Assembly: GCA_033442325.1 (NCBI GenBank)
Contig: JAWQFM010000028.1
Coordinates: 62,001-126,000 of the forward strand
Direction of reading: 5' to 3'
Length of the DNA: 64,000 bases
From: Salpingoeca rosetta
Taxonomy: Eukaryota > Protista > Choanoflagellata
Positions within the stretch are counted from its first letter, which is position 1. Every line of letters begins with the position of its first letter. Below are positions 5,495-8,400 of the stretch, piece by piece. A program made the translations under genes and the position numbers. The notes beneath the pieces were generated by a model. It was given only the letters and a program-made list of their open reading frames with translations. It was not told the DNA's origin and made no database searches.

Positions 5495-8400
5495 ATGTCG
5501 AGGCACCGGTTTCAGCTGCACGCCGACGACTTCACGCACTACGACGACGACTTTGGTGACTTCTCCGACGACAACCACGACTACTACGACGACGACTACG
5601 ACCAGCCACAAGACTCGTGCGTCTACGATTGTTCCTTCTTGCTTCGCGTTTGCGCATGCATGCATGTGTTCATGTGTGCATGTGTTCATGTGTTCATGTG
5701 TTCATGTGTATGTATGCATGTATGTATGTATGTATGTGTGTATGTGTGTATGTATGTATGTATGTATGTATGTATGTATGTATGTATGTATGTATGTATG
5801 TATGTATGCATGTATGTATGTATATGTGTGTGTGTGTACGTGTGTACGTGTGTGCGGGTGCTCCACCTTTATGTGCCCCGCTCACAACCGTAAACCCGTT
5901 AACCACGTGCCCACGCACGCCAATGCGTTGTTGCTGTTGTTGCCATCCTGGTGTTGCAGGCAAGTCCTCTCCCTGGACGAGCATCTCAAGTCCCTTACAG
6001 TCGGTGGGTACAGCCTTTGAATCCCAGAAAATCACCCCCCTCCTTTCTTGTTCTTGTTCTCGAGCTCTAGCCCTTGTTCTTCTTCGTTTCTCTAGCTCCT
6101 CCACTCCCCCCCTCCTCCTCTTCCTCCTCCTCCACCCCCTTTCTTCCTCGTCTTCTTCCTCGTCAAACACAGCCAACCATGCCAAAGCCACCATCCCTCG
6201 CTTCACTGGGCAAGAAGCAACCACTCTCCAGCGCTCAGCAACAGCAACAGCAACAGCAGCAGCAACAGCTACAGCAGCAGCCGCAACTCGCCTCCTCGCT
6301 GTCGAGCTTACTGGCTGGATCAAACCAGACCAAGCCGGCGGGTGGGCTGTCATCTCTCTCTTCCTCAGCACTGGCATCATCCTCACGACAAACATCGCCG
6401 GCAACAACCAAACCGACGTCCCTCTCTTCTCTCATGTCCAAATCCCCAGCCTCATCCAGCAGCAACAGCAGCACAACCAAACCGTCGCTCGCAAGTTTGC
6501 GGCTGGGATCATCCCCATCGCCATCATCGTCATCGCCATCATCGTCCTCCACAACGCCACCGACGTCGTCTCTATCCAAGCAGTCCCCCGCCATCCGTAC
6601 TCCTCCGCTCTCTAGCCTCCAGACAGCACCAAAGACCACAGCCACGACCACAATCACGACCAATGGCAAAAAGCCGTCTCTCGCCTCCCTGTCCTCATTG
6701 GTAACATCATCATCGTCATTCCGTTGTGGTGCTGCCTCGAGCCTGTCGTCCCTCATCCTCGGCGACAAACCGAACCGGAAAGACACGACAGCAACAGCAG
6801 CAACAACAACAGCAACAGCAGCAACGGTTCGGAGGGCATCAGCAGGTGGCAGTGACGGGAGAAGCGTAGCTGCCGTCTCGACGGGTGTCGCATCAGTGCA
6901 CATCTCCACTGCCACTGCTGATGGTGATGACACCCGGACAGCGGCCAAACACCAAGACCATTCCCATTCCCGCGAACCATCACCACCACCACCAGCAGCA
7001 GCAGCAGCACTGGATGTGTTGTCGGCATCATGTGCGGGTGCCACGCCGTGTGCACCTTCGTCAGCGGCACCATCTGCGTTTGCGACGGTGCTGGCACGAA
7101 CCAAATCGACGCCATCATGGTCGTCACCACCGGCGGATGGAGTCGATATTCCGCACTTTACATGGCGGTTGACGCGGCCCGCGCTGCAGTGATGGTGGTG
7201 CTGTTAGTGGTGGTGGTGGAGGCAGGGATGACTACAACAACGACAACAACGGCAATAGCACCAGCACCACTGGGGGGCGGCAGCCATATCAACCGTGCCG
7301 GCGTCATCAGCTCTTCCGTGTTTGCTCTCATGTCCCCATTTCTCTTCTTCTCTCCCCCCTCTCTTTCTGTTCCAATGACCGCCCCGACCACCGCTCAGTT
7401 ATTCTCTCTCTGTCTCTCTCTTCATGTTGATCATCACCGCTCTGCCCGTGGTTGATGCTTCGTCCTGTTATTCAATCACACGTGCCTGCAAGCACACGCG
7501 CACGCATTGTTTATCGGTTCATTCATTCCAATCACTCAAGAATTCACATGTGCTCTACTCTCTTCCCTATCTTTCCTGCGCACCTGTGTGTGTGTGTGTG
7601 TTTGCAGTTTCCGCGGCGAGTACACGGGGAAATGGAGGGAAAAAGAAGAACAAGAAGAACAAGAAGAAGAGCAAGGGAGGCCTCAAGGTGAAGGACAAGA
7701 CCAGCACAGGACAACAACAACAACAACAACAACAACAACAACAACAACAACAACAACAACAACAACAACAACAACAACAACAACAACAACAACAACAACA
7801 ACAACAACAACAACAACAACAACACACGTCGTCGAAGCAGAATGGCAATGGAATCCACAGTCATGAGCAACAGCCTGCAGCGCGCGGCGCCGTTGAAGCT
7901 GGCGATGCTGGTGACAAACAACCGCCAAAACTGTCCCTGACCATCTCAAGTTCGCCCTCAACCACAACAACAACAACAACAACAACCACCACCACCACTC
8001 CAACTGCTGTCGCCACCACTTCGACTGCCAGCAGCAGCAGCACTGCAGCTACTGGTTCCACCACTGCTGATGGTGCACGCGAGGAGCCAACGCAGGGAGC
8101 AACAAAGCCGAAGAAAGCAAAGACATCCAAGGACAAGGCAGAGGTGTCGAATGTCAAGCGGAAGTGGAAGAAACCAAAGACCATCGCACGCACGGTCGGT
8201 TTTTCCGAATTGACCGTGATGATGAGGATCAAGTGGTTGGAACATGGTTACCGTCTGTGTGACATTGTTCCTTGCATGTTTGATGGGTGTTTTGACAAGG
8301 GATCTCACGATCATTGTACATGTGTGTGTGTGTTTGCGTTTGCGTTTGCGCGTGTTTGCGTGTGTAGAAATTGAGCGACGTAGTGCCACCGCCGCATCTG

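Follow-up and report, generated by a model that had tools for sequence, protein, structure and literature searches.

Introduction

Ski7 connects the cytoplasmic exosome to the Ski helicase complex. It arose through alternative processing of HBS1, which makes it a textbook example of two functions obtained from a single gene. Here we describe the HBS1 locus of the choanoflagellate Salpingoeca rosetta, found on contig JAWQFM010000028.1 of assembly GCA_033442325.1 (positions 62,001 to 126,000 of the forward strand; this whole stretch of 64,000 nucleotides (nt) is called the window, and all positions are counted from its first letter unless another contig is named). The second intron of this gene contains an open reading frame (ORF) that probably makes a GTPase-less Ski7-like product within HBS1. 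An earlier note, made from the letters of the sequence, had proposed an animal-style GTPase-less isoform that would use this ORF as an alternative terminal exon. A literature search returned no report tying Ski7 or HBS1 splicing to choanoflagellates, with the 2018 PNAS survey (Marshall et al.) lying outside that search.

In human, the corresponding protein is isoform 3 of HBS1L (HBS1LV3 / SKI7, NP_001138679.1). The animal exosome motif has the consensus A+PShFAahL (PMC6143672) and a core, PShFAahL, that includes F563 and L567 in human. The human SKI3-docking helix comprises residues 451-464, of which L454 and I458 insert into SKI3 (PMC11540850); counting back 105 residues from R559 puts these two residues in NLSLSELIAETI, within LSLSELI. 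A further element, Patch 4 (PFDFxxxSPDDIVKxNQ; ENFxxxSPDDIIQxAQ in yeast), binds CSL4 and, according to published work, is conserved from yeast to human more strongly than any other part of Ski7. Human SKI7 carries AARPSAFASTL, GSLSSLAF and NLSLSELIAETI, and the monkey protein AARPSAFATTL (Brunkard and Baker 2018, supplement); more generally, vertebrate SKI7 keeps GSLSSLA along with SLADL, SLESL and SLSEL variants.

The S. rosetta locus resembles the human one in several respects. In both, the specific coding block lies inside the HBS1 locus downstream of shared N-terminal exons, its own stop leaves the product GTPase-less, and it encodes a long disordered insert with SLxxL-type motifs followed by the exosome motif, in human (A)RPSAFASTL at about 105 residues and here PSAFATVL at 108 residues from the last SL[A/S]SL repeat. 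The agreement of these spacings is probably a coincidence, the Nematostella spacing being 59. On the other hand, the human form arises by a clean splice to alternative terminal exon 5, whereas in S. rosetta the piece upstream of the ORF is mostly retained. R559, the Patch-4 motif PFDFKSASPDDIVKANQ and the SKI2-touching C-terminal helix of the human protein are all absent from the S. rosetta ORF. The shared N-terminus of the human protein is 144 amino acids (aa) long with a folded HBS1_N domain, compared with 55 aa in S. rosetta.

Similarly, the SKI7-like proteins of cnidarians (Nematostella XP_001639585.1 and Exaiptasia XP_020909608.1; Brunkard and Baker 2018) begin with the same acidic MSRHR N-terminus as the S. 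rosetta gene. They continue with 6 to at least 8 copies of [T/S]SLSSL[A] in a Ser/Thr-rich region and then +P[S/T]MFA.T[L/I], that is, with the same kinds of elements in the same order as here; in the supplement of that study, Nematostella SKI7 has 6 LSSL and KSRPTMFALTL, and Exaiptasia at least 8 SLSSLA and RVKPSMFAFTI. Unlike the S. rosetta ORF, both cnidarian sequences have a perfect Patch 4 (PFDF..SPDD[IV][IV]) and retain the basic residue of the exosome motif; they are predicted as N-terminal fusions.

Among fungi there are precedents for a methionine-start Ski7 inside an HBS1 intron (Candida) and for truncated GTPase-less forms, the latter in basidiomycetes as well as in animals (Marshall et al. 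2013). At the Candida albicans SKI7/HBS1 locus, as here, Hbs1 is reached via a distal acceptor and the Ski7 methionine lies within the region that is intronic for Hbs1, the S. rosetta candidate being the AUG at 6179. The Candida locus differs in having a mapped internal transcription start and a Ski7 that keeps its GTPase, whereas the RNAs seen here begin at exon 1, without a sign of an internal start (6095-6289 being masked in the mapping), and the ORF encodes no GTPase. In ascomycetes such as Lachancea, Aspergillus and Saitoella, a single donor is used and the proximal choice includes the Ski7-specific sequence, a layout that the S. rosetta sequence would permit; in those species, however, the long isoform continues into the GTPase. 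Of the two S. rosetta acceptors, the distal one alone is confirmed. Alternative 3' splice-site choice of the fungal type was thus not found in S. rosetta, where the proximal acceptor was not seen in use and the stop at 7192 with 415 nt of non-coding tail separates the ORF from the GTPase exons. In basidiomycetes a truncated GTPase-less product results from non-removal of an annotated intron (Marshall et al. 2013), as may be the case here, although retention keeps the frame open in basidiomycetes and closes the exon-2 frame after five codons in S. rosetta. Finally, plant HBS1/SKI7 loci produce unproductive splice forms (Brunkard and Baker 2018); like the abundant RNA described below, these stop prematurely or keep an intron in the Ski7-specific part of the locus.

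Results

A putative Ski7-like reading frame in intron 2 of HBS1

HBS1 intron 2 spans 6004-7607. Within it, a proximal acceptor (AG 6094-6095) opens a reading frame that continues exon 2 to TGA 7190-7192 and would give 420 aa in total, while the distal acceptor (AG 7606-7607) opens exon 3. The geometry described in the earlier note was confirmed in the sequence on each of these points, including the phase 1 end of exon 2. The ORF is positioned between the shared N-terminal exons and the GTPase exons, and its stop excludes the GTPase, as in animal-type SKI7. Taking all lines of evidence together, we hold the chances to be somewhat better than even that intron 2 contains real coding sequence for a GTPase-less, disordered Ski7-like protein. 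The features of the locus are as follows.

5495..5616 (122 nt), + strand: HBS1 exon 1, with the ATG at 5495 and an acidic N-terminus; reads and contigs connect its last 30 nt to 5960
5960..6003 (44 nt), + strand: HBS1 exon 2, ending in phase 1 and common to all RNA forms; donor GTGGGT at 6004
6004..6095, + strand: retained 92-nt piece between donor GTGGGT and AG 6094-6095, kept in the dominant RNA
6096..7192, + strand: putative Ski7-like ORF in frame with exon 2, serine-rich, disordered, without a GTPase; stop TGA 7190-7192
6185..6766, + strand: nine clustered SL[A/S]SL motifs, the last copy (6731-6766) resembling the human SKI3-docking helix NLSLSELIAETI
7064..7093 (core 7070-7093), + strand: PSAFATVL, a SKI7-like exosome motif of the RRP43-MTR3-docking type, with Ala where animals have Arg/Lys
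7193..7607, + strand: non-coding tail, transcribed at 65-225x, T-rich, ending at the distal acceptor AG 7606-7607
7608..8194, + strand: HBS1 exon 3, a linker that is K-rich, poly-Q and T-rich, reached via the read-confirmed 6003->7608 splice
8368..11820, + strand: HBS1 exons 4-14, translational GTPase and domains II/III; stop 11818-11820

Several compositional features distinguish the ORF from its surroundings. The frequency of C at codon position 2 is 0.56-0.74 compared with 0.08-0.34 at the other positions; the phase of this signal does not change between about 6300 and 7190. Past the stop the signal disappears, and base composition shifts at 7192, where the ORF ends. Third-position T amounts to 0.13 in the ORF and 0.14-0.17 in the confirmed, disordered exon 3, as opposed to 0.27 in the other introns of the gene and 0.31 in the tail (7193-7607). 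Together with the motif repeats described below, the phased C and the third-position composition point to protein-level selection on the embedded ORF, acting at present or until recently. The antisense strand of this region is also open, for 322 codons.

The predicted product carries nine L[A/S]SL motifs, of the SL[A/S]SL type that docks human SKI7 on SKI3. The earlier note had counted about eight [S/G/P]LxSL motifs in a serine-rich disordered background, and this description held up: composition-matched shuffles gave 0.72 L[A/S]SL motifs on average and none of 20,000 reached nine (p < 5e-5). No second cluster of this kind occurs in any of the window's six frames, where other open stretches have at most one copy. 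The motif serines are encoded by both TCN and AGY, and the leucines by CTC, CTG, TTA and TTG. One ORF copy reads SSLSSLI where the human SKI3-docking helix reads LSLSELI, a match at the level of the motif only. Further downstream, PSAFATVL is the single occurrence of PS.FA..L in the six frames of the window (p = 1.3e-3, composition shuffles), and the product terminates 32 residues past it with ...IPHFTW, so the C-terminus was found as the earlier note had read it. Since the ORF ends there, it has no counterpart of patches 2 and 3 of human SKI7 or of the SKI2-contacting helix. By its predicted sequence, then, two of the three animal SKI7 motif classes are present, in the right order and in the right gene.

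Structure prediction and homology searches were less informative. AlphaFold2, run on the single sequence, gave the ORF product no fold (predicted local distance difference test, pLDDT, 38.9), a disordered and uninformative model. Pfam, a PDB sequence search and the ESM Atlas returned no match to the ORF, and no paralog of it was found in the genome. The 337-aa product expected from the AUG at 6179 had no exact copy on record in assembled contigs, a collection that possibly leaves out this genome's records. An exhaustive HMMER search covering 1.84 billion representatives yielded a single match, P0001, a tandem retroelement fragment with E = 4e-8, which we rejected as chance: four repeats of one 34.7-bit match had been summed, and the downstream frames encode no reverse transcriptase. 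As the sequence searches were blank, the comparison with SKI7 is based on motifs.

The host gene is HBS1

The plus strand from 5495 to 11820 supports a 14-exon gene model in which all introns are GT-AG and the open frame of 691 aa encodes a translational GTPase with the G1 motif GHVDAGKST. Pfam searches with single exons recovered GTP_EFTU (6.3e-11) and GTP-eEF1A_C (1.1e-15), indicating eEF1A-type GTPase and C-terminal beta-barrel domains. Against solved structures, the last exon matched HBS1L best (1.6e-8 and 6e-8) and eRF3A next (1e-6), a modest margin. The N-terminus, MSRHR followed by an acidic run, is the same as in the cnidarian HBS1/SKI7 sequences of the Brunkard and Baker 2018 supplement. 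No second Hbs1-like gene was found in the 55.4-Mb genome, where the nearest other match to the GTPase exons is 57% identical. Judged by its predicted product, the host gene is HBS1.

The likeness of the exon 2 product to the animal HBS1_N domain is confined to the first helix of that domain (KLSSCLDQLNSILGD...). As the canonical splice runs from exon 2 directly to the lysine-rich linker, this Hbs1 seems to be without most of that domain.

RNA from the locus

We took advantage of two stranded raw-read RNA runs (X22 and X23) and the contigs of two older runs (X13 and X14), from three studies in all, aligned over 5855-7705. Simple repeats at 6095-6289 and 7591-7705 were masked in read mapping, and the proximal junction, an internal start and the 3' end are not directly visible in those stretches. 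All depth is on the strand that bears the exon junction reads, and the RNA is therefore sense to HBS1.

Upstream of 5960, loose ends of reads (25 and 56, along with both contig sets) are the last 30 nt of exon 1 and establish the junction from exon 1 to 5960, while intron 1 is almost silent at 1-5x. Past 6003, loose ends of 15 and 21 reads have the consensus TTTCCGCGGCGAG..., which is the sequence from 7608 onward. The 6003->7608 Hbs1 splice is thus confirmed, and the full Hbs1 predicted from the acceptor at 7607 is borne out by reads as well as by the 691-aa model.

The remaining RNA, which is abundant, begins with exons 1-2, passes through the donor and stays unspliced to at least 7590. Depth over 6004-6094 is about 40x in X22 and about 100x in X23 (about 105 in one count), equal to that of exon 2, and sense depth is 30-225x across 6004-7590 and 30-146x over the ORF. 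The X13 and X14 contigs are colinear through exon 1, exon 2, 6004-6094 and onward without a gap, and they span the masked stretches inside the ORF at exact genomic spacing. Within the mapped ORF region neither reads nor contigs list any joint, insertion or deletion. Read-through of the exon-2 frame ends five codons on, in ...LTVGGYSL followed by TGA 6018-6020, and produces an ORF of 60 codons.

A 6003->6096 junction was not seen in the two read runs or in the contigs of the two older runs, with 6095-6289 masked. Due to this masking, any such join would appear only as a minority of the loose ends at 6003. These agree with exon 3 at 0.75 and 0.89, so that another acceptor could account for about 5 of the 15 and 3 of the 21 donor-spliced reads at most; relative to the read-through depth, the proximal splice then has an upper bound of about 3-10% of the molecules in these samples. 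The clean splice expected in the earlier note is consequently not the main RNA form, since the dominant transcript retains the 92 nt and its frame stops at 6018-6020. Nor was the expected polyadenylation site between 7192 and 7600 seen: no polyA loose ends are listed in the mapped region 5855-7705, of which 7591-7705 is masked. The X14 contig ends at 7440 and the X13 contig at 7553.

RNA depth peaks at 136-225x over 7281-7404, 2-3 times the depth of the ORF, and then declines, being about 200x at 7300 and about 60x at 7590. Possible causes of the peak are 3' bias, heterogeneity of the 3' ends and a separate short RNA. Twelve molecules of X23 start at 7567, 40 nt upstream of the exon-3 acceptor. 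Minority differences occur in about 10% of reads. Those at 6034-6036 (A>T and C>G) are shared by X22 and X23, whereas X22 alone has C>G at 6347, 6417 and 6422; all are probably sequencing artefacts near C runs.

Discussion

Possible routes of expression

Since the dominant RNA stops the exon-2 frame at 6018-6020, a protein from the ORF must come either from the AUG at 6179 or from a rare 6003->6096 RNA. The AUG at 6179-6181 (plus strand) is the first AUG in any frame past the 6018 stop; it is in the frame of the ORF, has A at -3, directly precedes the first SLASL motif and would yield 337 aa. Because the RNAs seen begin at exon 1, this route needs re-initiation past the 60-codon ORF or a start site hidden within the masked repeat. 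There is no ATG in any frame between 5498 and 6178 of the unspliced RNA; we had regarded this depletion as a possible signature of scanning and dropped the idea, as composition accounts for zero ATG (P(0) = 0.70). By the other route, a rare 6003->6096 splice would produce the 420-aa animal-style fusion. The unspliced RNA might also be an unproductive or stored form that controls output, with ordinary Hbs1 given by the splice from donor 6003 to the distal acceptor at 7607. By either route, the ORF product might connect the Ski helicase complex with the exosome, its SL[A/S]SL motifs contacting SKI3 and its PSAFATVL helix motif docking in the RRP43-MTR3 cleft of the exosome, if these motifs behave as others of their type. 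The genes of these would-be partners are multi-exon in this genome.

These elements can be assembled into a specific proposal, possible yet doubtful in our estimate, in which one donor has three RNA outcomes. Distal splicing would give Hbs1; the dominant unspliced RNA would serve as a two-cistron message encoding a 60-codon Hbs1 N-terminal ORF and then the Ski7-like ORF from AUG 6179; and regulated removal of the 92-nt mini-intron would give the fused form. The closest unicellular relatives of animals would on this proposal possess a Ski7 without Patch 4 and without the motif Arg.

Evidence against a Ski7-like product, and rival explanations

A number of observations weigh against a translated Ski7-like protein. 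Translation from an AUG downstream of a 60-codon ORF is normally inefficient. The length of the ORF is near chance, dinucleotide shuffles of the intron reaching at least 372 open codons in 3% of trials. No homolog was found in collections without this genome's records, whether the query was the complete ORF, only the first 100 aa of it or, at E <= 10, the motif region. The exosome motif lacks the basic residue that precedes its Pro, Arg or Lys in animals and plants, the sequence being S-A-A-P-S-A-F with Ala in its place and reads showing no difference there, and human R559A was part of a triple mutant that abolished binding. The Patch-4 motif (PFDFxxxSPDDIV) is not in any frame of the window, and two strict patterns found it nowhere in the genome beyond chance-level matches, although a diverged or intron-split copy would escape them; the earlier note had already remarked that the motif Arg and PFDF..SPDD were absent. 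Finally, the masking described above hid the proximal junction, any internal start and the 3' end from direct view. Given that the basic residue and Patch 4 are missing and that the likeness is one of motifs, we label the product Ski7-like rather than proven Ski7.

The chance matches to the Patch-4 patterns included a kinase exon and an exon-like VPFGGSTPDDVV at G000:C14. The latter stretch, L005 (G000:C14:608999-612027; match at 610499-610527, minus strand; ...GRVPFGGSTPDDVVSSIVALTGHLP...), is the sole genome match with any resemblance to Patch 4 and was judged chance, being two residues short between PF and PDD and set in an unrelated-looking context.

If the ORF were an alternative terminal exon, joined by a clean 6003->6096 splice and polyadenylated before 7608, the 420-aa fusion would be its main product. 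Phase and acceptor fit such a model, the frame is open from 6096, animal SKI7 is built likewise, and the fall in depth over 7300-7590 along with the contig ends at 7440 and 7553 would agree with 3' ends there. Furthermore, the 0.75 and 0.89 agreement of the loose ends at 6003 leaves a few reads for another acceptor; most of these ends nonetheless go to 7608, and the remainder (at most about 5/15 and 3/21) stands against read-through of about 40 and 105. In X22 and X23 alike, 6004-6094 has the same depth as exon 2 and the ORF; the 92 nt are also kept in the X13 and X14 contigs, which come from two other studies, and no polyA loose ends are listed. The intron to be removed would also be the shortest of the gene (92 nt, the others being 171-1604 nt) and is without the CTCAY motif found near most 3' ends, the absence of a branch site not being decisive. 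We therefore regard this model as quite unlikely. Of the animal-style isoform proposed in the earlier note, sense transcription, coding-type periodicity and SL[A/S]SL and PSAFAxxL motifs matching cnidarian and vertebrate SKI7 stand, while its alternative terminal exon and, with Patch 4 missing, its full membership in the family are not established.

Retention itself suggests a different explanation, namely that intron 2 is a retained or detained intron regulating Hbs1 output, its ORF being untranslated and its motifs either the decaying relic of a Ski7 exon or a product of low complexity. The dominant RNA is indeed unspliced with an early stop, retention is the usual form of alternative splicing outside animals, and unproductive splice forms are made from plant SKI7/HBS1 loci. 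Long ORFs come close to being expected from so stop-poor a composition, the ORF has neither Patch 4 nor the Arg, and the chance retroelement match at E = 4e-8 illustrates how easily short similarities arise. We consider this explanation unlikely because the codon phase stays the same across about 900 nt of non-identical sequence and is lost right at the stop, which is unexpected without selection on the frame. In addition, the repeats persist as protein sequence, their serines being drawn from both codon families, and the two motif classes are ordered as in real SKI7. Moreover, the most abundant RNA is one that, with its early stop and more than 1.5 kb of tail behind it, would normally be cleared. 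A third view is that the ORF is translated into a serine-rich disordered protein that is unrelated to Ski7, has no role in the Ski complex or the exosome and is either nested within HBS1 or fused to it. This would account for the lack of a detectable homolog, Pfam family or predicted fold and for the missing Patch 4 and basic residue. It is nevertheless very improbable, as such a protein would have to sit at the one gene and position where animals, fungi and plants have Ski7 coding sequence and happen to carry both SLSSL repeats and PSAFAxxL.

Implications

If a GTPase-less Ski7-like product is indeed made here, its SLSSL-repeat and PSxFAxxL modules would be older than animals. A conserved repeated motif, of which the human SKI3-docking helix is one copy, would be recognised in the serine-rich insert that was described as "of unknown function" in 2018, and a natural Ski7-like protein without Patch 4 would test how far Patch 4 is needed. 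Should the proposal of three RNA outcomes also be true, the modules present before animal origins would be the SKI3-docking and the exosome-docking one alike, and the mode of expression would be one undescribed for any SKI7/HBS1 locus. The locus also holds a warning for annotation: the ORF is intronic, and a transcript bearing it would be taken for simple intron retention.

Other observations on the locus

Confirmed coding exon 3 contains a perfect (CAA)38 at 7711-7824, which gives the Hbs1 linker a Gln tract of about 40 residues, and downstream of it a threonine-coding (ACA/ACC)n at 7959-7998. The HBS1 introns (5617-11607) consist mostly of microsatellites, such as (TGTA)35, (GT)n, (CA)n and (CAC)n, and their acceptors are without polypyrimidine tracts. 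A CTCAC/CTCAT motif lies 23-68 nt upstream of the acceptor in 8 of the 13 introns, with none before 6095 or 7607. Beyond HBS1, a convergent neighbour gene on the minus strand (12300-13500) appears to end about 500 nt past the HBS1 stop and contains a long (GAT)n at 12830-12925.

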